Source: Basidiobolus meristosporus CBS 931.73 (Eukaryota; Fungi; Basidiobolomycota). From it: a stretch of 64,000 bases of DNA. Where the stretch lies: the NCBI GenBank assembly GCA_002104905.1, contig MCFE01000457.1:7871-71870 (forward strand), given 5' to 3'. The notes under the pieces are model-generated. The model saw only the letters and a list, made by a program, of their open reading frames with translations, had not been told where the DNA came from and ran no database searches. The position numbers were made by a program, and so were the translations under genes. The first letter of the stretch is position 1; every line of letters starts with the position of its first letter. Of the stretch, positions 6,601 to 61,131 are shown piece after piece.

Positions 6601-8952
6601 TTATTTCGGCAAAATCTTCAGTGATTTATCGGCCTTGAACTCGCCCGCAGCTGGATGTGCTACTTGGTCATCGTACTCCGGGGTTTGCTTCGGCTCGATA
6701 CGCACTTCCTCGCAGCGGTCGGCACTTCGCAGGCTCTCTTCGCTCAGCTTGATCTTCAAGAGGCTTTCGGAGATCGTGGATGTAATCGAAGGCCGGCGGA
6801 ATTCCCGCCTTGCAAACGCTTCAGCAGCGGAGAACGGAGTCAGAACATTTCCATTGACGTCCATGGGTGGAGAGATGATGGCGGGCTCGATTACGTCCAT
6901 GATACGCTCCTTGGTGGGCGAGAGGTTCAGGGCGGGAATGTACTTCGGCTCCCCCGGGCCTTCGCACATAACTTTGAGGCGCTCGCTGCCGTCGGGGACG
7001 CGGTGGGAGAAGACTACCCGGATGTTTTTGTACAGGTAGATGCGTTTCTTCGAGGGCGAGCAAAACTGCAGATGAATTGCGTAACGCAGAGTTCGGCTTT
7101 CGCTGGGTGATTCTGGCACTGAATAAGATTTCTGGCGTAAAAATGTCTTCGAATTCTCTGGCATATCCGAAAAATCATACGGAATGAGGAAAAACTTCAC
7201 GGCGGTTTTGTTGGGGTTTTTGATGACCACTTGCAGTTGGCCCTTGGGGGGGATTCTGTACCCGTGCGGGAACCTTTTGTCATTGACATTCTGGAGCTCC
7301 CCGCCCTCGAGATCCACCGTGCCCACATAAGGGGATGGTGAATCGGAGTTCCCATGCTGATAGAAATAAGCTGGAAAGTCTAGGTTGAGGTGCGGCGGGC
7401 ACTTCAGCGAGGGCTTGCACTTGCCTTTACCAAGAACCCCAATTTGAACGGCGAAGTTGATGGGTTTCGAAGGAAGGGTGGACATTCTTCCGCTCAAGAT
7501 GGATTCTTCATAGCTCCCTACCAGTGAGCCAAACAATTCCGAAGGGTTCAAGCATGAGAGGCTAGATCTGCGGCCCCCGTATCTCGGAGGCATCATTGCT
7601 CCCATCATGCTGGGCTGATACAGAGGGCTGTTTCTAGGAACCGAGTGCTTAAAAGGGGACAGAGGGGATGGTGAGGGTGGAGTCAGATTAATTTGGCAAT
7701 TGTATGGCTTAAGGATGGTAGGCTCTACTGTGGAACTTGCGACCGGTTGATTCAAAGCAAATCGTCTATTCTCTTCGCGGACGATGGAGGAATGGCTCTC
7801 GGCAAACGGGTGGGTAAAGGTATGGTGAGGAGAGTCGCCAATGGGTGAAGCAGCCGGAATGCTCACTGGACGCGAAAGTCTGAACGACGGGGGCGCTCCC
7901 ATCCGATCTTCCTCCGTGTTCCATTTCGTGAATCGAGTCTCGTTGAGCTCTTCGACATCTTCCTTGCTTCCGCTGGCATGTTCCGTTTCTTCTTTAAGAA
8001 TAGCTAATTTTTGTGTTGTGGTGTGATGCAAACTTTTTGACATATATCCTCCTTGCAAACTATCCAGTGCCGATGATTTGCGTTTGAGTTGAGGCGTCTG
8101 CTGGCCAGCTTCGTAAGTGTGTCTGACAGGGTCCGCGAAGTCGCCAAGAGCAGACTCTGATACATCGTGATCTACGCGTTCAGGATCCTTTGTGAAATCA
8201 GTCAGAACAAGGCCGATTGAAAGTAGCAGATGTGGGCAAGTGTACCTCTTTGACGTATTCGAGATGCGTTTCGGTTGGAACCTGACCTTCGCCTGCTTTG
8301 ATCTTTTCCAACTCCTCAGTGCAGTACGATACACACACATTCAGCTTTCCAAAAGCAGTAGAAGCCCCGTTGAATTGGTTGCTGGTAAGACTCAGTTCGC
8401 TCGGGAAACACTTTGTTGAGCACACGCTGCCGTAAGCTGCAATATCATAACCCAACTCTTCTTTCGGGATCTGGTTCGTGCCGATAACAGAATGAAGGGG
8501 CAGGAATCGTATCTGAGAATAGATGGATTGCAAAAGTAGGACGAGCTGTGTGGTGTCTAATTTACTACGCTCGTTCAGCTTTCGCTCGCTGGGTGAAAGG
8601 ACATCAAGGATTAGTGGGGTTTGCGATGACAAGGTTGCATCCGTTCGACCACTCACCAACTCTCAAACGAGATGGACCAACATTCGAGCAGGGCATTATT
8701 GGGCTTGCTAAAAATGTGGATATGGATAGGGGCACCATTTTTCCAGGCGTTAAGGGCGCTATCGAACGAATGCTCAGGTTGCTAAGGGAACTAGGGTTCA
8801 GCAAGTTGTACTAGGACATGAACACGCCCAGGCAAACAACGAACCTGTGTACTAATTCTTGCTCTTAGAATGATTTGACTAATTTTTGTAACAAATTCCA
8901 TTTCAAATTTCGTGTCCAAATGTTGACTGCTAGCTATAGGCAGCAAAGGCAT
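6601..8952 (-). CDS. ATOS/FAM214-family protein (DUF4210 plus C-terminal 'chromosome segregation' domain) with a HORMA-like N-terminus
   Basis: Exons 8952-8845, 8781-8657, 8588-8246, 8187-6601 (GT-AG introns of 63, 68, 58 nt) give one open frame. It contains LVGSYEESILSGRMS, FAVQIGVLG..CPPHLNLDFPAYFY..PSPYVGTVDL, GYRIPPKGQLQVVIKNPNKTAVKFFLIPYDFSDMP..KTFLRQK and LRYAIHLQF..YLYKNIRVVFS. The start codon is uncertain. Confidence 0.85.
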
Positions 8953-21453: not shown

Positions 21454-24330
21454 ATGGACAAACCTACTCAGACTCAACACCGTAAGAGAAGAGAAAAAAG
21501 ACCATGTGGCTATTGTGGCCAGCCTCTCTGCCATGCAGCACACAGACAGGACTTGTTCCATCATTCCAGCTGATCATAGTGCCCAATAGTGCCATAGCAT
21601 GCCAGATGGTGCCTGATCATGCCATAGAGTACCAGATGGTGCCATACAGTGCCAATTTGGGATCAAAATTGACATGCATATGACCCTAAAATATCAAATT
21701 ATTAACAAAATATACAGCACTCTCTGGCACTATGATCAATGGCACAATGGAACAAGTCTACAGCATAGGAAGTATTACAAGGTTCATGGCCAGTGTTTTG
21801 CCACTCAAGTCATATTTGACCATTCATTGGTCACTACCATAGCAACATTATCTTGCCAGCCAGTTGATACTACTATATTGGCACCTGGCTGTCTTTGTCA
21901 CCTTGTGCAAACTGAGTCAGGTGAATTTGTGATGCCTTTAGGCTCACCTCAGCCTTCTGAATATGGCACACAGAGTGATAGTGCTGACAAAGAAGGTTCA
22001 CTAATGGATTTTGAGCTTATCTCCCCTAACAACAGTACCAAATATAAGCCTGGTCAAATCCCTATATGCAAAAAGACAACACACGTTGAAACAAATGCTG
22101 AGGATACTTTATTGAGCCAAGTAAGCACAGTAATCCATGTACTGGTGAATGATGTAGTGTTGTGGCTAGAGAAGTGGCGCCTTTCCACTAATATCAGTAA
22201 AGGGGATTTTGAGGATTTAATACTACTTCTTGCCAAAATCATGCCAGCTTGCAACTTACCATGTACATGGTATAGGTGGATAACCATAATGGGGTTGGCA
22301 ACATATGATGCAGAGACTGTCCTGGATCCAGCATGTGTTAACAGTTGCATGGCATTCACATCCAAAAATGCTACCATTACACCGTTTCCAAATTGTCAGG
22401 AATCCACCACCATTGAGGGAAAACATTGTTTACACTTGAGATATATTCCGGTTATACCCCATCTGAGGAAGCTGATGCAGTCCAATAAATATTGCAAAGC
22501 TATACAGTACCACACTCAGTATCTATCAAGCGCAAACATATCTAATATATTTGATGACAAACATTACAAACAGCTAAGAAGCAAGGGCTACTTTGAAGGT
22601 ATGTATGACTATGCACTTGCTTCAGCACTTGATGGATTCTCATTAAATAAGTACTCTACCAGCAAATCCTGCTGGCTACTGATTCTCATCAATCTGAATC
22701 TGCCCACCATCTTATGGTACCAGAGCAATAATCTTATGGTAGTCTCACTGGTATCTGGGCCTAAATCACCATCCAACCTGAATAGCTCCTGGTATCCATT
22801 GCTGGATGAATTTTGTCTGCTTTCCAGCAGGATAACAGTGAATGGCTGTCATGTAAAAGCACATATTATTATCTGCATTGGAGATACCCCAACCATCAGC
22901 AAGATAGCAGGTTTTTCTGGGCACAATGGATGGTGTTGCTGTCAAATGTGTGAGATCCAGGGGATTTACTCCATAACTCACACACCTTATCATTAGCCAA
23001 ACACTAGCCCTAGGAACATCATCCTTCTACAGAGAGAATGTACAGAAATCAACATGCAATTGCAGCAAAGTTGGCAAGCTATAAGCCATTGGCTGGAATA
23101 TGGAATCAATTGGAAACAGGAGAAACTTAAGATAAAAGGTATCTGTCGGAGCAAAAGCTTTCCACTGGGTGCAATGCATTTGCTTTTCAACAATATCCCT
23201 ACACTGATGACCAAGTTGTACATGGGGCATTTCAAGCTAAATGAGCCCTTTGAGATGCCAGAGAAATGGGAAAGAATTGGCAAGATATTACAGAGTATCT
23301 GCCACCCTAAGTACTTCTCACAAGCTGCAATCAACATTCCTACACATATGCAACAATATAAATGCAAAGACTGGATGAGTTGGATATGCATTTATTCAAG
23401 TGGGGTTCTGAAGCGATTTCTACCAAATGTACATTGGATGCATTGGAAGTCAAATGTGGACATTGTAGGAATATTTATCCAGAAGTGGATCATCAATGCC
23501 AACTTGACACTTCTAGACTATAGCCTAGCTAGGGGCTTTGCCATCATATCTACCACCATCATGTCAGTTGAGTAGTAAATCAACTGCACTAAGCTATTTT
23601 TTGGAGCCTCCCTCACAAAGTGGTGTTTTATATATAGGTACTTAGTTTTGGCTTGATTATTACATTTCTTAGATAGTGAAATACAACTTTGATTATCCTA
23701 GTAACCACATGTTGACTCATCTAAGTCAAGACCCAAGTCTTTACATAGTTTTTGTAACCATAGAGCCACCTTAGTTGCTTGATAAGCAGTCATATACTCT
23801 TCTTTGGTTGTAGAGTGTGGTATAATTGGTTATGTATTGCAATTCCAACTAACAGCTGCTCTAGCATATGCAACTACATACCCAGAGGTAGAGTGTCTGT
23901 CAATCAGACCCTACCTCAATCTGAAAACTATAGCCATTGCATCTTTGCCTATCAGCTGCTCCACAGTAATACAGAATCATAATTAAGATACCATGTAAAT
24001 ATCTGAAGATATTCCTAATAGCTGCAATTTGAATACAAACACAATTACAGATGAGTTGAGTTACTATTCTTACTGTCACTGAACTATAGGGTCATGTATA
24101 AACCAAAAAGTACATCAGGATCCTGGCCACTGATTGATATAAAAAGTCTTGGTCCATATTCAGGCTGCTATCACCCAAAACGTACTCAATTATATGTGAA
24201 TGTTAATTTTTAATTTTGAAGCATCCAATAGTGTCTTTGAGGTACTTGGACTGATTCAGCACAATTTTCTGCATAAATATGTCAAATTTGACTTTAACTA
24301 GAAGAAAATAGCTCAATTTTTCAAGATCTT
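21454..24330 (+). mobile_element. CACTA/EnSpm (Tnp2/Transposase_21) transposase pseudogene
   Basis: ATG at 21454, then CGYC...H, ALASALDGF, WLLILINLNLP, GPKSP, IGDTPTISKIAGFSGHNG..CCQMC and LGAMHLLFNN. Interrupted by a MITE and by in-frame stops. The element termini were not found and the 3' boundary is approximate. Confidence 0.85.
21549..21759. mobile_element. 211-bp MITE of the PHIS family
   Basis: Termini GGACTTGTTCC...GGAACAAGTCT with a 3-bp ACA duplication. It is absent from the homologous CACTA copy at ~56080. Internal ATAGTGCC-type subterminal repeats. Confidence 0.85.
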
Positions 24331-26715: not shown

Positions 26716-29562
26716 CCACAGATCTACTGCTTGAATGTTTAAGTTAGAGCAGTTTTTAGTCAAATCAATTAGTTATATGCTTAGCCTATCAGTATATCAT
26801 TATTATCTATCAAATCCGTAGATTAGTCAGCAAGTAAATCAGCAAATCCTTACCAGACAGGAATAGATATATTAAGTAGGATCTTATTGGGTGATGATGA
26901 TGAAATCAAATGAGTCATCAGCCATAGCTTACATCAGGAAATACAATTAGTCAGCAATTGATCTGGCAAAATGCATATAAGGAGTTGCTGGAACCTCAAT
27001 AAAAATTAGTTCAAGTTCTAGTGCGTACAATACTAGCTAAACGCCCTATTCCTCTACAACTCTTATACCAAGACTTGTAACATTAGTAGTAGCAAAAACC
27101 ATAAACCTCCCTCCTAAAGAAAGAAGGAGCCTCCCTCAAGATGTCCAAAAGTCAATAATGAAAGAATGCTATGCAGCAAATCTTGGCCCAACAGCAACAA
27201 GGAATGACTACCATGGCCCAAAGCCAGCAAAATCTGTCAAGAGCTACTTTAGTGTGAAGGTAAACCAGTACCATGGTAGAGTCAATAAAAACCTGCAAAC
27301 TTGGCTCTAACAAATTGAAAAAACTTTGAAGTCTAAGGGAATTGCTCCAGAAGGCAAGTAACATTATGCAGCCTGTTACCTGGCCAATGCAGCTTTACAG
27401 TGGTACCACAACAAGATTACGTCAGCCACCATAATGGGATGCTCTACAATCTCTACCTGGGATGAGTTTGTGTTGGAAACTCAGGATGCTTTTGAACCTC
27501 CACACTAGCAGACACTACCAAGAGGAAAGTTGAAGACATTCAGACAGAATGGAGTGGTTCAAGAGTACATCTATGAGTATAGATGTCTACTGGGACAAAT
27601 TGAAAGAATGGACCTCCTGGATCAAGTGTAATACTTTATTGATGGGTTGAAAGAAAGAACTTGCAGCAAGTGAATTATGAAAGACCCCAGACTATTGAAG
27701 AAGCCATCAAGATTGCCATTGACTATGACTCAGCTATGTTTGGAGTTGGGAAGCCCACAATTACCAACCAGAGAGGCTACAATCACTATGAAAGCAGATG
27801 ATCAGAAGCAGTGCCAATGAAAATAGATGCTATGCAGAGGAATTCTACCTCATAAGAGTGTAAGAAGAAAGGAATTTGCTTCAATTGCCACCAGAAGGGA
27901 CATATTGCAAAGTACTGCCCTTAGAGAGAAATGGACACAAGCCATCAAGAACCTTCAACCATATTGAAGCTCTTGAACATAGTAACATGGAGGATGAAGT
28001 TGAACAAGACTGAGAACTCACCTTCTATATGACAGAAGAATACCTATCCCAGATGACCTCAAACTCAGGAAAGCTGCTATATTTGAATGGAGTAATCAAT
28101 GGAGTACCTGCCAAGAACATGATTGACTCAGGAGCATTGCATGAGTACATGTCAGAGCAATTTGCTTTGAAAGCTGGAATCAACTTGGAACCCACCAAAT
28201 CAACTTCAGTCTCAACAGCTGATGGGAATTCTTATATAATCAACCATATTACTCAGCCAGTAAAGATGCAGATCAATGATATGAAGAAGACCTACAGGCC
28301 TATATATTTGGGAACTGCAAGTTTGACCTCGTACTTGGAAAAACCTGGCTATTTGTTGCAATCCATCAATCAACTGGAGAACCCATGCTACTCATATCCA
28401 GAGCAAATAACGTAAAAACACTTTCGCAACCGATAAACTTTATATGTTTATGTACAATCTTTATTTTGCGACAACCATTCAGTAAACTTTTTTTTCTTTT
28501 TTAAAAAAATTTGTCAAACATTTTCCCTCTTATTTTTCATTTGACATATCCCAAACCCACTCCTACGCCCATTTCCCACATGTCTATTTTTATGACTCTT
28601 CTCCCTTGAGCTATTACCAGTAAGACTGGATTTCAAACTGGTTAATTCCAGTGTGTGTGAAGCAAGTGAACTTAGCAAGACACAGCTCTGTAGAGCACTT
28701 AGAAAAGGAACCCAGATGTTCCTCATGGTGGTATCACAAGATGATTCCTCTACTGCAGTACCCCAGAAGGTCCAGGCTCTTTTAGAGGAATATTCAGACA
28801 TATTTCCAGATGAACCTGTAGGCCTACCACCAGTTAGAGATGTTGATCATGCCATTGACACAGGAGATAGCCCTTTATTGAGTAAGACACCTTACAGAAT
28901 GAGTCCATTGGAATTGGAAGAAATGAAGAGACAAATAGATCAGTTATTGGAGTAAGGATATATCAGACCCATCAAGTCACCATGGGGAGCACCAGTATGT
29001 TTTGTGAATTAGAAGAATGGAATACTTAGGATGTGCATTGACTACAGAGCCCTCAACACAGTTACCATGAAGAATAAGTACCCCATACCTTGGGTTGATG
29101 AACTTCTAGACCAACTCAACAGAGCCACTGTGGTGGTGTATAGGTCCAATGGAGAGATATGTCCAACACTTCTCAAGTGTTTTGTGTGTGGGGTATTCAC
29201 TGGGTGCAATAGCCTCTGGCAAAAGCTTGCTAGGAATACTTGGGTTCTGTCTCTAATCTAATGGTATGGGGAATAAAGCTACAAGCTTGTCAAGGGAAAG
29301 CTATTGAGCTACAATCCCCAACTTGGTTGGCTTCTTAACAAAAGTATGTGCTGGGTTCAGCGTCCTTTGAGTTGACTATAGACTTGTTCCGTTGGATAGT
29401 GCCGCATAGTGCCAGCCTGTTTATAGTGCCGGATTGATCCGGCACCCTACGGCACTATCTGGCACTATAATTTCTACCATGATGCCAGTGGTATGATACA
29501 GTTACTGGTAATTTTACTCAATCTTACTTATGTTGCTCAGAATAGTGCTTTCCTTGCTTTAT

Positions 29563-30447
29563 TTACTCTTCATAATGCTCCAGACACATTTCTCTCAGTG
29601 GATGTCTTCTTGTATGAACGTACTGTGCATTAATAAGTATCTTAACTATTTTACCTATTCTGCTGTTTTCTCCTATATATGACTTTCCTCTGTATTTACC
29701 TGCCAATATGCTGAATCTCTTCAGATATCCAAATGTGTGCTCTACCCTTACTCTGAAATGATTAAATATCTCATTGTAGAGCTTCTGCTTCCTGCTAAGT
29801 ACACCATTCCTTGGCTTCCTATAAGCCGTAATACATCCTAATCTCTGACAATCCTCTCCTATATAAGCTAAGTCTGCCATACATTTCTCCCCTCTACTGA
29901 ATTCAGGATGATTCTCTACCCAGAGTGCTTTGTCATGCCTACTTCCAGCAAATGGCCCACTAAACCAGATGATGTTACCCTCAATGTCAGACAGTGCTTG
30001 AAACTTCACACAGTGTGCCTTGTACTTGCCAGAATAAAAGTGTCTCTGCCCTCTAGAAGGTCTGTTAATCCTCACTGGGAAGGTATCCAAAATACTCCTG
30101 ATATGGAACCTGTTGCTGAACACTCTGGGATATGGAAGTCTATTGGAGCTTCTGAACCTAGTATTCCAAGCTTGCTCTAAGTCATTCATACCCTCTGCAA
30201 GGTGGTTCTCCATTGCTGTCAGCTGGGAATGAAAGCTTCTAGGACTTTTGTTGCCATGGATGGTGGGATGAAACCTTGTAGGGCAATAGTTCTTGTAATA
30301 GCAGAGAAGCTTGACAAGAGATCTCCTTGAGTAGATTGGGGTTGATGGTCCACAGTACTTGGAATAGATCTCCTCTAGTGTGTCAAAAGGAAATCCAGTG
30401 GTAGTGATGGGATTGATAAGAAAAGACCATTCAGATGAGTAAGTCAT
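29563..30447 (-). CDS. DDE_Tnp_4 (IS5/PIF-Harbinger/ISL2EU-type) transposase, 294 aa, intronless
   Basis: Catalytic triad ILDTF / MADLAY / RVEHTFGYLKRF, plus FYSGKYKAHCVKFQ and GPFAGSRHD. The ORF is uninterrupted. Confidence 0.9.
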   Translation of the reverse strand: MTYSSEWSFLINPITTTGFPFDTLEEIYSKYCGPSTPIYSRRSLVKLLCYYKNYCPTRFHPTIHGNKSPRSFHSQLTAMENHLAEGMNDLEQAWNTRFRSSNRLPYPRVFSNRFHIRSILDTFPVRINRPSRGQRHFYSGKYKAHCVKFQALSDIEGNIIWFSGPFAGSRHDKALWVENHPEFSRGEKCMADLAYIGEDCQRLGCITAYRKPRNGVLSRKQKLYNEIFNHFRVRVEHTFGYLKRFSILAGKYRGKSYIGENSRIGKIVKILINAQYVHTRRHPLREMCLEHYEE

Positions 30448-30806
30448 ATTAAAATTGGTAGATGATCGTATAAAGGCGGTTTGAATTGATTTGGCGCGAT
30501 CCGCCTTATTTATCTGATTTTTAATACATTATGGTTAAATCTCCATCAATTGCCACGTATCGCATCATTATGTCGCAAAAATCATCCGCAAACAATGCCT
30601 TGATACTTTTATTGATGCTTTAATCATAGGTCTATAATCAAATAGGAAATCTGCGATTGATGTGATCTGATCCGTGTCAACGCAATCCGAGATGCATCAT
30701 GCATAATATATGGAGATTTCAACAATCACATTAGTTTTCATATATATTTCATATAAGACCAGGTTGATGTCAATATACTGCTGTATAAGTATCCAAATCC
30801 GTTGCT

Positions 30807-32054
30807 ATGGTCCCCATACCAAGCCTCAACTCATCTTTAGTACAACCCAGACAAAACCCATCCCCCAGCTCACAAGCGCGGTCCGGACCGGAAAAGTCAA
30901 TGTTGGATCCGTTCAAATTCTCGCCAAATGATTTTAGTATGGCCCAAGTGTCTATGATGAGCCTTCATACAGATATTTGGGCACTACTGATTAATCTAGC
31001 AGAACTAGATACCTCAGAGAGTCGACAAAGATGGAAGAATTTGAGTAGAAAGCTGTGGCATGAGTTCTACATCAAGATGCCAGCCAATGTATGTAAAAAG
31101 ATATATAACAAGACAAGTATTGAAATCAAGAATGAGCTGAGAGTGAGGGGATTTGACGAAGAAGCCGCGCGGGAGCAATTTCGCGCGCAATTTGCACAGT
31201 ACAGGCCGGACGCGTCCGTTCGTGCCTCAACTTTGGGAATCAAAGAGATTTTGAATGAGTTTTTGCCTCAAATGACTAATGTACTACGTGATATATTAGT
31301 AGAGCTAAGTGGCTTCCAAAAGCAATATACACAGGACTCATCCAGGCAACAGCTCCAAAGTATCAGACAGAGGGTAAGTGAATACCTTGAGGAATCAGAT
31401 GGTGAGCTTCAGGAGGAAGAATACAGACCGCGAGCAACATCATCCAGATTGCGCCAGCACGCCTCGCTGGATTCCCTACCATCTCTTGCAACCACAGCGC
31501 GCCGGCGCACATCAGTCCAGAGTACGCCAACACCCTTTACCGGAACGCCCCACCTCGAGTCAACGCGTGTTGGGTCAACGCGCGCGCTTCAGAGCAAAAC
31601 TACAAGAACTCGCCAAACTGCTCATTTAGACACAAGTCCATTGGAGCGGACCAAGTCGCGTCAACTTGCAGCATCACATCGAACTCAGCCAAGGGCCATC
31701 TCAACGCGTCAAGGAGCGCCTGCGCGTGCTGTTTTGCCTGACCATCAGCAAGTTACTTCTGGTGAACTGACTGATGATGACCAACATGAAGTGCCTCAAC
31801 CACCAGAGCCCTTGGCAAGTAAAAGAACACGTCAGCGCGTGGCACTAAAGGCCGGTTCAGTTGGTTCAGTTGGAGTGATTCAGCGCGGCCAAGCTGCAGC
31901 ATTGCACTCATCAACTAGGAGGCAAAATACTGACTACGAATACACAAGTAGCCAAGATGATAGTCAGCCAGGAAGTAGTATAGGTGTGCAAAGTGAGTCA
32001 CTACCAAATGCTTCAGTAGTAATCCCTATGAGAAAAAAACCCAGGAGAAGATGA
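30807..32054 (+). CDS. Transposon ORF2: putative Myb/SANT-like DNA-binding protein with a disordered tail and C-terminal NLS
   Basis: Uninterrupted 415 codons. N-terminal DIWALLI...RWKNLSRKLWHEF...NVCKKIYNK, a helical middle, an S/T/R/Q-rich tail, and a PMRKKPRRR end. The true start may be ATG 30807, 30900 or 30939. Confidence 0.75.
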   Translation: MVPIPSLNSSLVQPRQNPSPSSQARSGPEKSMLDPFKFSPNDFSMAQVSMMSLHTDIWALLINLAELDTSESRQRWKNLSRKLWHEFYIKMPANVCKKIYNKTSIEIKNELRVRGFDEEAAREQFRAQFAQYRPDASVRASTLGIKEILNEFLPQMTNVLRDILVELSGFQKQYTQDSSRQQLQSIRQRVSEYLEESDGELQEEEYRPRATSSRLRQHASLDSLPSLATTARRRTSVQSTPTPFTGTPHLESTRVGSTRALQSKTTRTRQTAHLDTSPLERTKSRQLAASHRTQPRAISTRQGAPARAVLPDHQQVTSGELTDDDQHEVPQPPEPLASKRTRQRVALKAGSVGSVGVIQRGQAAALHSSTRRQNTDYEYTSSQDDSQPGSSIGVQSESLPNASVVIPMRKKPRRR

Positions 32055-35000
32055 TGCGATCGCTTTGAATCGCTCACATTTGTAATGATCCCAACAACCC
32101 TTTTTTTTTGCGATCAGAATCGAGCCGGCGCAAATCAGTGATCATCAAATTTTTGATATAAGTAATATCAAGGTCGTCTCACATTTGAGACAGAACCCCT
32201 ATAAATAAACACCCTGCATATATATACGTCATCTGTAATACCAGTGCAGCTATTGGATCTGTTTCACACCTACACAATTGCTCGCGTGCTGGCTATGACA
32301 CCTTGTCCAATCACTAGGATCAGGGATTTACTTGCTCAATGAGCAAAATGGGATATTTGATGGCGAATCAGGTAGCTTTTTTGGTAGTCAATGAGCCAAT
32401 TGGGGGCTGCCAGCTTCAGGATACTTTTGGACCAATTAACCACTGAGATACCGTCCAATTGGAGTGAGGGTAACCAAAATGGTAAGTATTAGTGTAGTTT
32501 ATAGTGTGATACACATTTATTTCCATTTGCATTAAAGAAACATATCCAAATACCGGATTTTACCTGCCATAATAGCAGTATCCGATCGCGCACGTGATGC
32601 AAACATTACGAGTTGGCGCAATCATCCGTTCCAACCTCATTGTGTCAGATTGTGCCATAGTGTGCAAGATCGTCCCACATAGTGCAAAATCGTCCAAGAA
32701 CAATCCTTCCTTCTGGTAGCTATAATATCGCGCCTGATCGTTCTTTGCAACCGCGGATCGCGCCGCACGCCCTGGCACGGTACGATGGAACAAGTCTTAT
32801 GTACTAAAGCTTCCAAAGTCAAAACAACTGTAAACTCCACCAGCAGGGACTTGATATGAATGCAGCTGTGGTCAATAGTTACAAAGACAGAAAAGTATCT
32901 TTGCCTGTACAAGAACAAACTTGAGAAAGAATCAAATATAATAAAAGATACCTACTCTGAGTATTCCTCACAAGTGGTGCCTCCAAGGTTGGTTGGCTGT
33001 CAGCATGGTTTCCTGGAAGTGTCCCGTGGTCTGGGGGTGGAAGTTTAGGTAGCAGCAGGTAGCAGTGATCACACCAATCAATAAGTTGGTATATTGATAA
33101 AAGGGATGATGATTTATTGTTGAGGGATTGCCCCCCATAAATACTTTCTTACTGGCTAAGTGATTACTAATCATGGTGTTCCAGAAGGTTCTGGATATCA
33201 ATAGAAATCTTAATGACATCAGAATGACCTAAGAATGTTCTAAGTAGGTGCTGGAAGGTTCTAGGAGGCACAGCACATCCAACCATTCAGGAGTCAGTAT
33301 TCTGAAACCTGTGTAACCCAGGGATACCATATATGGTATGGAAATGGTAGGGATGGTGATATGGGCTGATCATGTGTTACTGGTACTGGCGCAGGCACTT
33401 GCGTAATATAGAAGTACATACTGCTAGTAATCTTACATAAAGTAGGGGATAACTTATGCAATAAGGTAAGCAGGTGTGATAGTCAACCAGCTTATAGGAT
33501 AGTACTGATCAGTTAAGACAAATGGGATAAAAATGAAATACAGGTAGTAGAGAAGTAAGGAAGTAGAAAATATAGGAGTGAGCACATCTGTCAGTGAGTG
33601 TCACTGTGACCCCACTACACCGCTATATTCTGCAAGATTGACCTCATGTCAGGATACAACCAGATTAGGGTGAAGCCCAAAGACATCCCTAAGACAGCAT
33701 TCAGGACCAGATATGGATGTTACAAGAACTTAGTCATGAGTTTTGGCCTCACGAATGTCCCTGCAACATTCATGACCCTGATGCAGACTGTCTTCCAGGA
33801 GTACTCAGAAAGGTTTGTGATAATCTACCTAGATGACATATTGATATACAACAAGACAGAAGAGGATCAAATGGTGCATATTGAAGAGGTCTTGAAGAAG
33901 CTAAGTGAGAACAAGCTATAGGGCAAGCTAGCCAAGTGTGAATTCTTCAAGGAACATGTTGGATATCTGGGACACATAGTGACTAGCACAGGAGTGACCT
34001 TAGACCCTAAGAAGATTGAAGTTATCAAGAATCTGAAGCAGCCCCATTGCATACCAGAGCACAGATCATTCCTTGGAATGGTTTCCTATTATTGGACATT
34101 TGTCAAGTCCTTTGCAAGTATTGCAGCCCCTTTGACTGACATCCTCAAGAACAACAATACCTACAAGTGAGACATAGCTTGTGAGACTGCCTTTCAGATG
34201 CTAAAGAATGAGCTTGCTAAGCTGCCAAGCTTAAGAATACCTGACTTCAGAAAAGAGTTTACTCTGTGCACAGGGTGTTGAGCCAAGAACACAAGGGAAA
34301 GGACTACCCAGTTGCCTTTGAATCCAAGAAACTAAACTCAGCAGAACAAAACTATCCAGTGCATGAGAACAAGATGCTTGCTATAATACACTGCTTGAAG
34401 ACATGGAGATGCAACATTGAAGGAGTCCAATGCACCATGAAGATTGATCATGCCTCCCTCATATATATATATTTACTCAGAAGGTATTCTCTAGAAGAAT
34501 GACAAGATGGAGTGAATACATTCAGCAATTTGATTGGGAAATTTTCTACTGCCCTGGGAAAAACAACATGGTTGCTGATGCCTTATCAAGATTAGAACAA
34601 GTTGCACAACTCAGCTGGGTGCATGAATCAGACTGGCCTAGCCTATTACCAAGGCACTTGGAGGATCATGCTATTCCTGATGGGGTAGATGAGGAGATCA
34701 AGAATATAATCCAGGATGAAGCCAGCAAATTTGTGGTGCAGGATGAGACACTCTACCAAATTGTTGATGGAAGCCCTATTGCCTATTACCCTTATGTTGC
34801 TTGCATGAATTTAACAAATAAGCTACACAATAGATGTGGACATCTTGGAATTGAAGGAACCTATAGCCTTGTGAAAGCCAGAGCATGTAGGCCCAGAATG
34901 AAACAAGACCTTGAAAAAGTTAATGAAATATGCCCAAATTGCCAAATTAACCAAGACCAACCATAGAGAATTGCTGAACTCTTTCCCTTAGAGCCTGCAA

Positions 35001-37078
35001 GACCATTTGAAAGATGGTAAATTGACTTTATTGGAAGACTGCAAACTACCAGAAAATGCAACCATTGAATCCTGGCAGCAATTGGCCATGCCACCAAGTG
35101 ACCAGTGGCTAAAGCAGTACCTGTAGCCAGTGAACAAGAAGTTGCAAGTTTCATCTACCATAAGATCCTTATGAAGCTTGGATGCCCTGTAGAGATTCTA
35201 TCCAACAAAGGAGCAAACTTTATGGCAAAGATATTGCAAGTTTACCTGAAAATGCAGCACATCAGACACTTGAAAACCTTGGCATGTGACCCTAGAACTA
35301 ATGGAGTAACTAAGCAATTTAATAGGCTAATTGGAAATATGCTGACCAAGTATGCAAGTGGAGCTGTCAGTAGATGGGATGAGTATATAGACAAAGCACT
35401 CTTTGCATGCAGAGATAGAGTGCACAACACAACCCAACAATTGCCACTTTACTTAGTGTATGGATGTGAACCAGGATTCCAAGAGTTCTCACACAACCAA
35501 AGCTTACAGATGCCTTATAAGATGAACTCAGTCAGCCAAGTAAACACCAGCAGCTGGAACAAAGACATCAAGAGGCACAGGCCAAAGTATGTCAAAGTGC
35601 AGAAAAGACAAAGCAGAGATTTGGTAAGATTATATCACCAGAATCATTGACAGTAAGGAACTTTGTATTGCTGAGAAACAATGATTGGAAGAAGTTTGAG
35701 CCACAATTGACAGGACCTTTTAAAATCATCAGAGAATGTCCATTTGCAACTTACCAACTAGTGGACAAACTAGGGAATATCTAGGAAGATTTAGCTCATA
35801 GAGACAGACTCAAGCTTGAAAGACTTGCTGACAATCCTGAACCATCAAGATATTGAAATCACAAGCAAAGAGATTTAGGAGAACCCTCAACTTTAGTAGG
35901 GGAGAATGTGATGGTCTACTGCTTGAATGTTGAAGCTAAAACAGTTTTCAGTTAAATCAATTAGCCTGTCAGTATATCATTGTTATCTATCAAATCAGTA
36001 GCATTTGTCAGCACATGAAACAGCAGATCCTTATCAGACAAAATAAATATTAAGTAGGATCTTATTGGGTGATGATGATGTAATCAAATGAGTCATCAGC
36101 CTCAGCCTACATTAGGAAATACAATTAGTCAGCAATTGATCTGGCAAAATATATATAAGGAGCTGCTGGAACCTCAATTAATATCAGTTCAAGCTTTAGT
36201 GAGTACAATACTAGCTAAACACCCTATTCCTCTACAGCTCTCATACCAAGGCTTGTAACAAGGTAATATTAGCTAACATTGTACACCAACACAAATGAAT
36301 ATGTGGATTCATGAAATTCATGTAAAAGAAGTGAGAGTCAAGAGATACATGGGCTTTTCAATCTAAACTCTCCTCAAATGCATTGTCAATACTCTTGATC
36401 TACTTCTGACTTTTGCCATTGTATACACTATGCCCTATAATATCTACATAATACCTCAGAAAGATCCCTTTTTGTTTTTGGTTGCAACTCTGAAGATTTT
36501 CTCTCAGTGAAGTGATAAAGAAAATGACAACCAATGTTCTCAAAATGTGTGAAGTATGTGAAGCAGTGGTCTACTGAAGTATACCAGAGATTGAGGTGAA
36601 ATTTGCATACACCTTTAGAACAGTACTCTCCTAATTTGTCACTTTGAAATACCTTCAGTTTACACTCTGTTTATGCTTCTGCAATACTTTTGAGGAGCTT
36701 GAATATCTCTAAAGCCACATCCTTTGTCTTTAGGAAGTATATCCATGTATGCCTAGTCTTGTCATTAATAGAAATTATTATATATCTCTTGACTTTAAAG
36801 AACAGTGTTATTAGGGGTCTTCATATGCCAGAGTGCACAATAGCCAATGTTTTGTGGGGTTGGCACCTCCTGTGCTTCTCAAACATTGCCTATGTTATTT
36901 GCATATGAGCATCCCTTACAGACACTCAATTTGATCATTATTGAGTAACTAAAGCCTAAGACATGCTGATGTTGCACCAAATGACTAATTTTCTACTCCC
37001 TAGTGAGTTAAGCCTCCTATACCATATCTCCAAGTTAGATTCATCAGCCTCAGCAATGTAAACATACATAGGCACAAT

Positions 37079-38862
37079 GGATTTGTTCTTTTGGATAGTG
37101 CTGCATTGAGCCATGCATGCTAAATGATGCCATAGTGTGACAGGGAGGCCAAGTGGACCTATACCTGGCCACAGAGTGTGAAACTTAGTTGTTCATCTTC
37201 ATGCAAAGTGGCCCCTGTGTTTCACCCACTATGCAGGAGAAAACCCATATTTTTACCTTTTTTTTGGGATCAATGCTGTGCAGGATGTGTTGGAGCAGAG
37301 AAGGACTGGAGATATATATCTGATACTCAATATTCATGGCACTCTTAATCTAGCTCCTGCAGCTTGTAACATGTCACAAATTTGTATGGCACTATCTTGG
37401 TCCACTAGCACTATCTGACACTATATATAAATAATAAGCCTAAGGTATGACCTATACAAAGCACTTACCTTTGTGGTGCGTATAGGTCCAAGGGAGTGAT
37501 ATGTCCAACACTTCTCAAGTGTTTTGGGTGTGGGGTGTTCACTGGGTGCAATAACCTCTGGTAAAAGCTTGCTAGGAATACTTAGGTTCTGTCTCTAATC
37601 TAATGTGAAGGGGAATAAAGCCACAAGCTTGTCAAGGTAAAACTATTGAGTTACAATCCCCAACTTAGTTGGGGTCATAACAAAAGTATGTGCTGGGTTC
37701 AGCATCCTTTGAGTTGACAATGTACTAAAGCTTCCAAAGTCAAAACAACTGTAAACTCCACCAGCAGGGACTTGATATGAATGCAGCTGTGGTCAATAGT
37801 TACAAAAACAGAAAAGTATCTTTGCCTGTACAAGAACAAACTTGAGAAAGAATCAAATATAATAAAAGATACCTACTCTGAGTATTCCTCACAAGTAGTG
37901 CCTCCAAGGTCAGTTGGCTGTCAGCATGGTTTCCTGGGAGTGTCCTGTGGTCTGGGGTTGGAAGTTCAGGTAGCAGCAGGTAGCAGTGATCACACTAATC
38001 AGCAAGTTGGTATATTGATAAAAGGGATGATGATATATTGTTGAGGGATAGCCTCCCTTATATACTTTTCTTACTGGCTAAGTGATTACTAATCATGATG
38101 TTCCAGAAGGTTCCGGACATCAATAGAAATCTTAATGACATCAGAATGACCTAAGAATGTGCTAAGTAGGTGCTGGAAGGTTCTAGGAGGCACAGCACAT
38201 CCAACCAATCAGGAGTCAGTATTCTGAAACCTGTGTAACCCAGGGATACCATATGTGGTATGGAAATGGTAGGGATGGTGACTCAGGTTGATCAAGTGTC
38301 ACGGGTACTGGCGCGGGTACTTGCCTAATATAGAAGCACTCATAGCTATTAATCTACATAAAGTGAGGGGTAACTTATGCAATAAGGTAAGCAGGTGTGA
38401 TAGTCAACCGGCTTATGGGATAGTACTGATTGGGTAAGACAAATGGAATAAAACTAAAATAAATATAGTAGAGGTATAGGGAAGTAGAAAATGAGGGAAT
38501 GAGCACATCTGTCAGTGGGTGTCCCTGTCACCCCACTACACCATGCCAGATAGTGCTACACATTTTTGTGTCATGTTACAAGCTGCAGGAGCTAGATTAA
38601 GAGTGCCATGAGTTTTGAGTACCAGGTATATATCTCCAGTCTTTCTCTGTGCTAATACATCCTGGACAACATTGATTGCAAAAAAAAGGTCAAAATGAAT
38701 TTTCCCCAGAACAACAGGTGAAGCATATGGGCTGCATTGCATAAACATGATGAACTATGTTTCACACTCTGTGGCCAAATCTAAGTCTGCTATACTTCTC
38801 TGGTACAAAATGGTACCATCTGGCACCTATGTTTGATGTGGCACTTCCAATAGAACAAGTTT
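37079..38862. mobile_element. Non-autonomous PHIS-family element with ~330-bp terminal inverted repeats
   Basis: Ends GGATTTGTTCT...AGAACAAGTTT with an AAT duplication on both sides. The first ~26 bp match the left end of 29380-32797. 37180-37410 is the reverse complement of 38545-38770. Confidence 0.8.
37472..38540. mobile_element. 1.07-kb solo LTR (second copy)
   Basis: TGTGGTG...CCACTACA, flanked by CCTT/CCAT. Collinear with 29129-29379 plus 32801-33619. Confidence 0.8.
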
Positions 38863-39874
38863 AATGATCATGCATTGTAACTTGTATATATTTTGAACTC
38901 TGACTCCCAAAGCCAATTTTTGATCATTTTTACTCAAATGAAGTAGCTCAGCTCAGTACAGACAAATTTCGCTTCCTGAGTAGTTGCTTTACTCACTCAG
39001 AGTGGGTTTCTAGCTACTCCAGGTACATTGGGCTAATCAATTGGTTTGCTCTCTTTGCCCCTGAGTTGTCACTCTAGTTTGGCTGCAGAGACTCACAGGT
39101 AGAAGCTTCTGGTGCAGAGTTGTCTCCCAGATAAGCCTTTGTTCCAGGAGTGGTCTTTAAGTTGCTAGACTACTCCATTATACCAATATATGCTGTCATG
39201 CTCCAGAGTTAATATACCATTCATTTAAATATTTACTTACACTCTCTGGTGTGGTTATAAGCAGCTGTTCCTCTGTAGCTATAAGGTTTGCCTGCTCTAA
39301 TTTATGATCTTTGCCCCCCTTTTTCCATTTGCATTCTCTTACACAGTGTCCCAGCCTCTGATAGTAATTACAGCAACCAGGTTTTCTTTGGTTCTGTGGA
39401 ATTGCCTACATTTCTGCAAGCCTTTGAGAGCTGAATACAGCATAATATTCAATATTCTCTGCTTAGTTTTATGTCTGAGTTGTTTAGATAAAGTTTTTCA
39501 TTGATGTGGTCCAAGGTCAATTAACTTCTCTCCACTTAAAAGAGAGTATAAATGGCTTGTACTTCTCTGGTAGGCTTCACAGTAGGCAGAGTATCCATTT
39601 GTCATTATCTACACCAGCATTGATACCACAATATACATCTTGCATTTCCAAGGTCTCTAGTTCTTAACATTAAATGCCTCCTCTACAGCAAAGGGGTTTG
39701 GGTTTTGTTTGCTGGTAGATGTCATTTTTGGAAAAAATTCAGGGTAATTGGGTCTTGTGAGCTATTGCAATTTAAGATGTGTTTGTATTTTAGGGATCTA
39801 TCAAGAATTAGTAATAATATCTTACCAGCTATTGACAAAAATAAAAGTTTGTATTTTTACCTTGGTAGTAATAG

Positions 39875-57929: not shown

Positions 57930-58805
57930 ATCTGGTAGGATACAGTTACTGGTAATTTTACTCAATCTTGCTTATATTGGTCAGAACAGTGCTTTCATTG
58001 AATTATGTACTCTTCATAATGCTTCAGACACATTTCTCTCAGTTGATGATTCACTCACAAGTCTATAGTCAAATAGGAAGTCTGCAATTGATGTGATCTA
58101 AACTGTGTTGATTCAATCCAAGAGGCATCATTCATAATACATAGAAAATTTTACAATCACATTGGTATTCATTAGTAGGTTATATAAAACCAGGTTGTTG
58201 CCTATGTTCTACTGTGTCAGTGTCTAGATCCCCCACTATGGTCCCTGTACAAACACAAAACCCATCTCTTAGCTCACAAGCATGGTCTGGTCTGGAAAAT
58301 TCAATGTTGTATCAGCTTGACTTGTTTCCAAATAATTTTAGTATTGGCTAAGAGTCTATGGAGAGCCTTCATATAGATATTTGGGTATTACCCATGAATC
58401 TAGCTGAGCCAGATAACAGCAAGTGTCAACAGAGATGAAGAAATCTGAGTAGGAAGCTTGGCCATGGGTTTTACATCATGATGTCAGCTGATGTATGGAA
58501 GAAGATATATAATAAGACAAGCATTGAAATCAACAATGAGCTGAGAGTGAGGGAATTTGATGAGGAAGCTGCACAAGAGCAACTCTGCATGCAATTTGTA
58601 GAGTACAGACCCAACAATTCCATCTGAGACTCAACTTTGGGAACCAACAATATCGTGAATAAGTTTTTACCTCAAATGACTAATATACTATTTGGTATAC
58701 TAGTGGAGTTAAGTGGCTTCTGGGAGCAATATAAGCAGGCCCCATCAAGGCAGCAGTTCCAAAGTATCAGACAGAGGGTAAGTCAATACCTTGGGGAATC
58801 AGAAG
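57930..58805. mobile_element. Decayed, internally deleted copy of the PHIS element
   Basis: 57930-58050 matches 29490-29600 (transposase 3' end). 58060-58805 matches 30630-31400 (promoter and ORF2 N-terminus). CpGs are lost. Confidence 0.85.
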
Positions 58806-58809
58806 CCCT

Positions 58810-61131
58810 ATGAAAAATTAATGAGATAATCCCATCAAAAGGGTGTCACAAAGTTAAAGTCCCATGACTAAGTGGTACTGATCTTGTTGGGGAATTGTCC
58901 AGAGACTGTGGAAAAATAATTGCACCCCAGATTTGACAAAAAACTCAGTCAAAATTTTTCATCACAACAATGTGTAAGTGGCTTTTGATTGGTGCCCTGC
59001 CAATTTGCTCACTTTCTGATCTCAGACACTTTATTTCCTCCTATGTTTGTGTGAATTGATAGGCTATTGCCTCTTTTTCACACTCCTTACTTCCTGAATA
59101 AACAATTTCTCTTACTTTCCATGCATACAAGTTGGTTTATTTCCATTGAGACTTCAGTTGTACCTCAATTGCCAATTGTATTGACCTATACAAGTCTCTA
59201 TACCCTACACTAACATTAAGGCCAACCCCACACTCAACAAGTAACTTCATTAAAATCCACCACTCAATAAGTATTTCTGCTGTAACACTCTGGTTCCATA
59301 ACTTTGGCAGGAACCCAATGGCTTTATGCCACTGTTCATTCACTGGTTCCCACATGTCCTGGTCTTCAGCCACCACTGTAAGGTCTAGCTCCTCATCTTC
59401 CTGTCTTTGCAATAAATCCTTGCAATATTCCAGTGTGTTTCCTTGCGCACTGCTCTTGAAGAAGTGCTGCAACCTCTTGGTGTGCCTATCAATGTTGCAA
59501 GGTTCCACTTAAGGCATTGTGATAGTCTTTTGAGCTCTTGACATTGTAGCCTTTTCTGTCAGTGGGATCTCCACTCTGTCAACAATGGAGGATGTGGAGG
59601 CTGTAGTAGACAAATTGCATTTTTCAGCAATCTCATCTAACTTGCTGGAGTGTAGCTCAACTGGCTGCGCTTCCAACTCTTGTGAAAACAGCTGTTTTCT
59701 TATTGGTAATTCTTCTTGGCTATAATGGGGTTCTGTCTGTTCCTGGCTTGCAGTGCTAATTGGCAAGAACTGCAGTCTTTTTTGCATGCCCCCCTGTCTC
59801 AGGCTTGGGTAGACATCTTTCCGTTTACCTTTTCCTTTATCACTGCCAGGTCTTTCACTGCTACTTTGTCTGAGTGCTTCTTGTAAAGAACCAAGTTTTC
59901 TCCTGGATAAATTCTGCTCTGATGCATCTGTTTTGGCCTGCTTGTCCCTTTCTGGCACTCTTCTGGCAGCCTGACATTTCTTTTTCAATTGTTTTGAGCT
60001 CTCAACCATAGTTGTGACAGGCTCCTGTAAGAGCAGCTGGTTTTTATTGCTGCCAGGTCCTTCACAATTACTTTGACTGGGTGCATTTTGAGTGGTACTA
60101 AGCTTTTTCATTTATAAATGTTGTGCTGGTGCATCCATGTCTGCCTGTTTGTAATGGGCTCTTGAAGAAGCCACTGGTTTTAGCCATGGCACCCTTGTTC
60201 TTCTGCCTTTGATGGCTTCTGCTACTCTTAAGATACTTTTTAGCATACCAATGCTGGCCCAAAATCCATTTGCCTGTTTGATTCCAGGATAATGCTCATG
60301 GAACAAGTCAAGTGCATTCTGCTTGGCCTTGAGCTCCTGATGGTCCCATGGTATGCCAGCCTTAAGGTGATGGTGTGCTAGACTTCTGACAGCCTCTTGT
60401 ATATTAGCGCACTCTTCATGATTGCACTCAAAGGCTTCATGGATCTGCAATTTTTAATTTTTAGGCTTTGGTATAAACACCACATTGTCTCCCTCCCATG
60501 CTGTGATAGGTTTTTCTGTGGGCTTTATCTCTGGACACTGTTGTTGTGCTTCAATGACTTTATGGTTATATTCTGCTGTTACATTAGGATATGGCTCAAT
60601 TTCTGGCTGTGACATTGAGCTACTTGAGTTCCTTCTTTGCAGCAAGGATACTGCTTTCTCTACAAGGGATATTGATTGCTCTACATGTATTATCTGCTCA
60701 TCCTATTTCTGGGCTATTTCCTGATTTCTCTTGGTCATTGCATCAATCCTATCAGCCACAGCACCTAATTGCTTCATTAATGCTTTGGTATGAGCTGACA
60801 ACATACTTGCTAATATGGGTGGAGGTGATGTTATCATGACCACTTGCTGATCTTCAACTGAGAGTACTGTGTTTGCTACACCTTTATATGCCTGAGCATA
60901 ATGGTCAGTCTGTGGCTCTGCAGAGGTTCTCAATTGCCTCCTTGACTGAGAGCCCAAAGGGTCTGCATTACTACCTTCAAAGGGCACACTGTCCACAGGT
61001 CATTTTTTGGATGTAGCCCCACTTGTTGCACTGAATGTCAAAGCAAGCTTTTGTCCATCTGTTCTTCTGTTGCCATCAACCATGAGGTTTGGTTGAGAAC
61101 CAGACAACTTTGCTTTATTTTTTGGTGGCAT
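58810..61131 (-). pseudogene. Most complete copy of the CACTA accessory ORF (about 770 codons in one frame, with premature stops)
   Basis: ATG at 61131 (MPPKNKAKLSGSQ). The five ORF-track fragments starting at 60996, 60645, 60450, 60111 and 59508 all lie in the same frame. Confidence 0.75.

Follow-up and report, generated by a model that had tools for sequence, protein, structure and literature searches.

An intact two-gene DNA transposon in Basidiobolus meristosporus, probably a new family of the Pangu/Harbinger2 group

The stretch of DNA analysed here, hereafter the window, comprises 64,000 nt of the fungus Basidiobolus meristosporus CBS 931.73 (contig MCFE01000457.1, positions 7,871 to 71,870), and all coordinates below are window positions. 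It carries a structurally intact DNA transposon of 3418 bp at 29380-32797, in which a transposase gene and a second open reading frame (ORF), ORF2, are transcribed away from each other between short terminal inverted repeats (TIRs). The element probably represents a new family of Pangu, one of the groups of the PIF/Harbinger-ISL2EU-Spy (PHIS) superfamily. Its features are listed first, those without a sign having no strand.

Structure of the element and its relatives in the window

29377-29379: left target-site duplication TAT; the corresponding position in an empty paralogous site is AAT
29380-29390 (+): left TIR AGACTTGTTCC, perfect 11-bp match
29396-29468: subterminal cluster of three ATAGTGCC copies and two inverted copies, partly at 10-bp steps
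29563-30447 (-): transposase gene, 294 amino acids (aa), intact, DDE_Tnp_4 (E=8.7e-24)
30448-30806: intergenic spacer of 359 bp between the divergent genes, CpG observed/expected 1.33, putative bidirectional promoter
30807-32054 (+): ORF2, 415 aa, intact by ORF reading, divergent from the transposase gene
32055-32786: right non-coding region, in which a motif scan found degenerate subterminal motif copies near 32649 and 32679
32787-32797 (-): right TIR AGACTTGTTCC, perfect 11-bp match
32798-32800: right target-site duplication TAT, adjoining the right end
37711-37731 (+): unoccupied paralogous target site GAGTTGAC-AAT-GTACTAAAGC, inside a second copy of the solo long terminal repeat (LTR)

The boundaries of the element could be fixed to a single base, because the paralogous LTR copy at 37711 has contiguous flanks. 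This LTR paralogue measures 1.07 kb and is 91.9% identical to the LTR unit that hosts the transposon; at such divergence, A in one paralogue and T in the other (AAT and TAT) appears unremarkable. Target-site duplications could be read directly, on both sides, at three insertions: TAT at the 3418-bp element, ACA at a miniature inverted-repeat transposable element (MITE) and AAT at a foldback element. The duplication is 3 bp rather than 2 bp, because at all three insertions the third flanking base changes in step on the two sides. A 2-bp duplication was rejected, since it would require the right ends to carry extra bases that differ from one insertion to the next and in each case equal the base preceding the left repeat.

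The ends are accompanied by clustered subterminal repeats. The window contains 10 exact matches to the 8-mer ATAGTGCC or its complement (2.3 expected), nine of them inside the master element, the MITE or the foldback. When one mismatch or fewer is allowed, its density reaches 41/kb at the left end and 33/kb in the MITE against a background of 0.54/kb, and copies are often spaced at 10-bp steps, a pattern suggestive of putative protein-binding sites. A match to TGACTTGTTCC at 60300 was judged to be due to chance. The right arm (32200-32500) contains several CCAAT-type boxes as well as an ATG directly before GTAAGT, downstream of which no ORF was found. About 150 bp past the ORF2 stop lies a TATAAATAAA stretch, possibly the poly-A signal of ORF2.

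Three related copies and the host repeat complete the picture:

21546-21762: MITE of 211 bp (21549-21759), ACA on both sides, ends GGACTTGTTCC and AGACTTGTTCC, seven subterminal motif copies
29130-33619: host solo LTR with TG...CA ends and an approximate 5-bp duplication, interrupting a Gypsy reverse-transcriptase ORF and carrying the transposon
37076-38865: foldback non-autonomous element (37079-38862, 1.8 kb) with inverted arms, AAT on both sides
57933-58803 (+): decayed, internally deleted related copy, the transposase 3' end fused directly to the putative promoter and the ORF2 N-terminal half

The two arms of the foldback (37079 to about 37397 and 38543-38862) are inverted with respect to each other and share 77% identity over 315 bp. 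Its centre is interrupted by the solo LTR at 37472-38542, the copy that holds the empty site, and without this LTR the foldback would measure about 713 bp. An earlier candidate, a short MITE at 37079 with a decayed right end and an AAG flank, was rejected, as the true end lies at 38862 in the inverted arm past the LTR, with AAT on both sides. In the decayed copy the transposase part is 90% identical to the intact element, and the promoter and ORF2 part is 76% identical and contains stop codons. A 440-aa ORF at 21674-22996 (+), which matches Transposase_21 (tnp2, CACTA/Plavaka type), has its mechanical start within the 211-bp MITE, indicating that the MITE inserted at the border of a different DNA transposon.

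The order of insertion is supported as Gypsy, then solo LTR, then DNA transposon. Retroelement copies near 63.5, 45.7 and 48.5 kb run uninterrupted through the LTR insertion point with a 5-bp overlap, and Ty3-type gag, protease and integrase fragments also occur in the window. An earlier note on this DNA had described the perfect 11-bp TIRs, the clustered subterminal repeats, the empty site, the duplications TAT, ACA and AAT, MITEs belonging to the family, and a three-tier nest of Gypsy element, solo LTR and transposon. All of these were found again here; the 211-bp MITE and the 1.8-kb foldback both share the ends of the element, and the uninterrupted retroelement copies, together with the LTR paralogue, bear out the nest. 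Elsewhere in the window, a 579-aa ORF at 6601-8340 (-) carries DUF4210 and Chromosome_seg domains (Atos-like), and its look-alikes in the atlas are mostly from Ascomycota, as would suit a fungal genome.

The two proteins and the CpG mosaic

The transposase belongs to the DDE_Tnp_4 / IS5-like type, and a domain scan found DDE_Tnp_4 alone, with no THAP and no further domain. The residues of the DDE triad, D121, D192 and E236, are invariant across 27 aligned relatives and are separated by 70 and 43 residues. An AlphaFold 2 model built on the alignment of the relatives reached a predicted local distance difference test score (pLDDT) of 92. Its matches in the PDB were weak at the level of the fold, nearly all of them DDE transposases or integrases (Tn5, ISCth4, Metnase and retroviral integrases). 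In an alignment with a cyanobacterial relative, the N-terminal helices of the transposase fall on the HTH_Tnp_4 region of that protein. These data support membership of the PHIS superfamily, which the earlier note had proposed along with an intact DDE transposase and an uninterrupted, divergent ORF2; each of these points was borne out.

An exhaustive search of 1.84 billion representatives returned 1693 relatives of the transposase at E<=0.001 and 22 at E<=1e-30. The closest public transposase, likewise of 294 aa, is 63% identical and unnamed, and the next is about 40% identical over the full length. No named relative was recovered by cluster look-ups and a profile word search, which gave solely unnamed metagenome or Logan proteins from short contigs. 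In one relative of 367 aa (P0002, 37% identical), the C-terminal 60 or so residues resemble a chromo or Tudor-type domain by eye. If real, this extension could serve a PHIS transposase for chromatin targeting.

No homologue or domain of ORF2, the second protein, was found in Pfam, NCBIfam, a word search or the atlas, and Foldseek returned generic helical bundles only. A single-sequence model (pLDDT 45) predicts helices at about residues 45-203, followed by a C-terminal half that is disordered and basic and ends in a KKPRRR-type stretch. ORF2 is a component of the family rather than a passenger of one copy, because the decayed copy also carries it beside the transposase remnant. The same divergent layout, with a second ORF free of annotation, occurs in two metagenomic relatives, L001 and L005. 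Their second ORFs have N-termini homologous to each other (E=2e-8); ORF2 occupies the equivalent position, and its profile comparison with them was not significant (probability <1%). In L005 both genes are enclosed by a TIR pair with subterminal repeats. This relative (L005:153-3206, JGI metagenome contig Ga0302300_1005303) encodes a transposase 35% identical to that of the element. Its TIRs have a 16-bp exact core in 21-nt arms that are 95% complementary, and its subterminal repeats are clustered GGATGC copies. Its left flank is an A-run and its right flank a T-run, and no direct repeat borders it; a two-gene element would here occupy an AAA|TTT target like that of Spy.

The nature of ORF2 bears on whether the element could be a classical PIF/Harbinger transposon with a TWA target, its Myb/SANT partner having diverged too far for detection. 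The DDE_Tnp_4 match and the two-gene layout would agree with this, and the N-terminus of ORF2, predicted to form three helices, shows a W/F/Y-spaced pattern that looks Myb-like by eye. Nevertheless, Pfam gave no Myb, SANT or MADF match to ORF2 even at E<=10, the profile comparison with the second ORFs of the relatives lends no help, TAA and TTA are both absent from the three duplications in the window, and the empty site has AAT. A classical Harbinger is therefore extremely unlikely, and the earlier note was right that the duplications depart from TWA; the transposase is paired here with a protein lacking a detectable Myb/SANT domain. Like the second protein of PIF/Harbinger elements, ORF2 may act as an accessory DNA-binding or nuclear-import partner, and the 359-bp spacer may serve both genes as a bidirectional promoter.

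The two genes differ sharply in CpG content. In its 885 bp the transposase ORF contains 2 CpG (observed/expected 0.05), and its 28 arginine codons are all AGA or AGG; ORF2 contains 56 CpG, and CGN accounts for 22 of its 42 arginine codons. The observed/expected ratio is 0.8-1.3 in the spacer, ORF2 and the right arm, 0.6-1.3 in all of the element outside the transposase ORF, and 0.06-0.10 in the flanking retroelement DNA. The boundary of the drop coincides with the ends of the transposase ORF. In the decayed copy, the ORF2 segment has diverged more than the short transposase segment, and CpG decay accounts for only part of this, divergence at non-CpG positions being 19% and 9.5%, respectively.

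Perfect ends and duplication, two intact ORFs and the CpG kept outside the transposase ORF indicate that the 3418-bp insertion is younger than the DNA around it. The earlier note had gone further, calling the element recently active and a candidate transposition tool. The intact ends and ORFs behind these labels were indeed seen; the labels themselves are drawn solely from that intactness, from which present mobility can only be surmised.

Position within the PHIS superfamily

Six groups of the PHIS superfamily were defined by Han et al. 2015 (PMC4482050), and several can be compared directly with the element. NuwaI and NuwaII target CWG or C|TNA|G and encode a Myb/SANT protein in the second ORF (PMC4482050), features that the element does not show. 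ISL2EU elements produce a 2-bp AT duplication, carry a THAP domain in the transposase and have a YqaJ second ORF. Spy elements make no duplication, target AAA|TTT and have a single ORF with D(79-80)D spacing (PMC4122938). Neither set of features is seen here. A relationship to ISL2EU or Spy, with a 2-bp AT duplication or none and a transposase of the ISL2EU clade, could draw on the two duplications that end in AT and on the flanks of L005, whose A-run and T-run resemble a Spy target. Yet the duplication is 3 bp at all three insertions with a co-varying third base, the element has two ORFs rather than one, with neither a THAP domain nor a YqaJ second ORF, and its ends do not fit the GGANNNNG consensus. 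The D-D-E spacing of 70 and 43 also falls outside that of Spy (79-80 and 44-62; PMC4122938), and such a relationship is very unlikely.

The group that fits best is Pangu, which corresponds to Harbinger2 in Repbase (PMC12730594). Pangu elements are characterized by a 3-bp A-N-T duplication and by ends of 11-40 bp that usually start with AG or GG (Han et al. 2015, PMC4482050). They average about 3487 bp in length, their transposase has a DDE domain only, their second ORF shows no known motif, and fungi and invertebrates are among their hosts (PMC4482050). The present element resembles them in its 3-bp duplication, its 11-bp ends, its length of 3418 bp, the start of its ends (AG in the master element, GG on the left of both the MITE and the foldback), its DDE-only transposase, its motif-less second ORF, its associated MITEs and its fungal host. 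It departs from them in that TAT and ACA each lie one base off A-N-T, which AAT fits, and in that its transposase of 294 aa stands near the short end of the range of published Pangu ORF1 entries (216 to 537 aa, mostly >300 aa; PMC4482050). It is thus most likely an autonomous cut-and-paste PHIS transposon forming a new family of the Pangu/Harbinger2 group, an assignment made from its anatomy against the published group description. A full-text literature search with the end sequence gave unrelated primers only, and the specific family may still be uncatalogued.

Several observations weigh against this assignment. Only one of the three duplications (AAT) obeys A-N-T, TAT and ACA each breaking the rule at one position. 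The nearest relatives of the transposase, at 63% and then about 40% identity, are all environmental sequences, none labelled Pangu, Harbinger, Nuwa, ISL2EU or Spy. Relative L005 has Spy-like flanks without a duplication, the window holds a single full-length copy of the element, and the transcription and mobility implied by the word autonomous are predictions from the sequence.

Some of these observations could favour a separate, undescribed PHIS sub-lineage outside Pangu, with a compact 294-aa transposase, an orphan partner and a truly relaxed 3-bp target (W-N-W or none). Two duplications out of three depart from A-N-T, the 1693 matches include no named relative and are headed by unnamed metagenome or Logan sequences, and most Pangu ORF1 entries are longer than the transposase of the element. 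Flank types are also mixed among single-copy metagenomic relatives, whose targets are ambiguous (ATT or TA in L009, no repeat in L006). Against this, all structural hallmarks bar two single bases match Pangu, the empty site itself reads AAT, three sites carry no statistical power, and named relatives are not to be expected because transposons are usually masked from protein sets. A sub-lineage of this kind is unlikely. In a fuller form it would combine the 294-aa transposase with an orphan helical and disordered partner unrelated to Myb/SANT, a loosened 3-bp target and a CpG-purged transposase gene, which is doubtful; if true, a CpG purge in the transposase gene alone would hint at gene-specific evasion of cytosine methylation, or long exposure to it.

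The suggestion of the earlier note that the element is an undescribed lineage with relaxed target choice was not supported as worded, as its anatomy matches the Pangu/Harbinger2 group described in 2015 apart from one base in each of two duplications (n=3). Relaxed target choice cannot be established from these data because there are only three sites.

Proposed transposition and comparison with known systems

On the assignment to Pangu/Harbinger2, transposition might proceed as follows. The 294-aa transposase, with an RNase-H-like core (D121, D192, E236) and an N-terminal helix-turn-helix-like region, would recognise the 11-bp ends and the phased ATAGTGCC repeats and excise the element. Reinsertion through 3-nt staggered cuts would leave the 3-bp duplication, preferentially at A-N-T-like targets. 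The ORF2 product would assist in binding DNA or in nuclear import, as the second protein does in PIF/Harbinger elements. The 211-bp MITE and the foldback may be mobilised in trans through the common ends and motifs, and such cross-mobilisation would agree with the ends that they share with the master element.

From the standpoint of genome annotation, the transposon family is ordinary and well resolved. The Pangu/Harbinger2 group is poorly studied, and only two potentially active Pangu families were counted by Han et al. 2015 (PMC4482050). With its defined ends, its empty site and its matching MITE and foldback partners, the intact copy described here offers a clean starting point. It raises the questions of whether a motif-less second protein stands in for the Myb partner of Harbinger, how the A-N-T target is read, and what caused the stripping of CpG from the transposase gene alone.

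Compared with classical PIF/Harbinger elements (Harbinger3_DR, PIF, Ping/Pong), the B. meristosporus transposon has the same transposase superfamily, two genes, a 3-bp duplication, short ends with subterminal repeats, and MITEs, whereas its target is not TWA and its second protein has no detectable Myb/SANT domain. It differs from the bacterial IS5 family in having a second gene and in residing in a eukaryotic genome. Plasmid-borne IS5 elements are 27-34% identical to its transposase over part of the length, and the NCBIfam IS5 models score 53 bits against a cut-off of 140. With the IS5 family it nevertheless shares a compact DDE transposase of about 290 aa, and according to Han et al. the A-N-T duplication of Pangu is consistent with that of bacterial IS5 transposons (PMC4482050).

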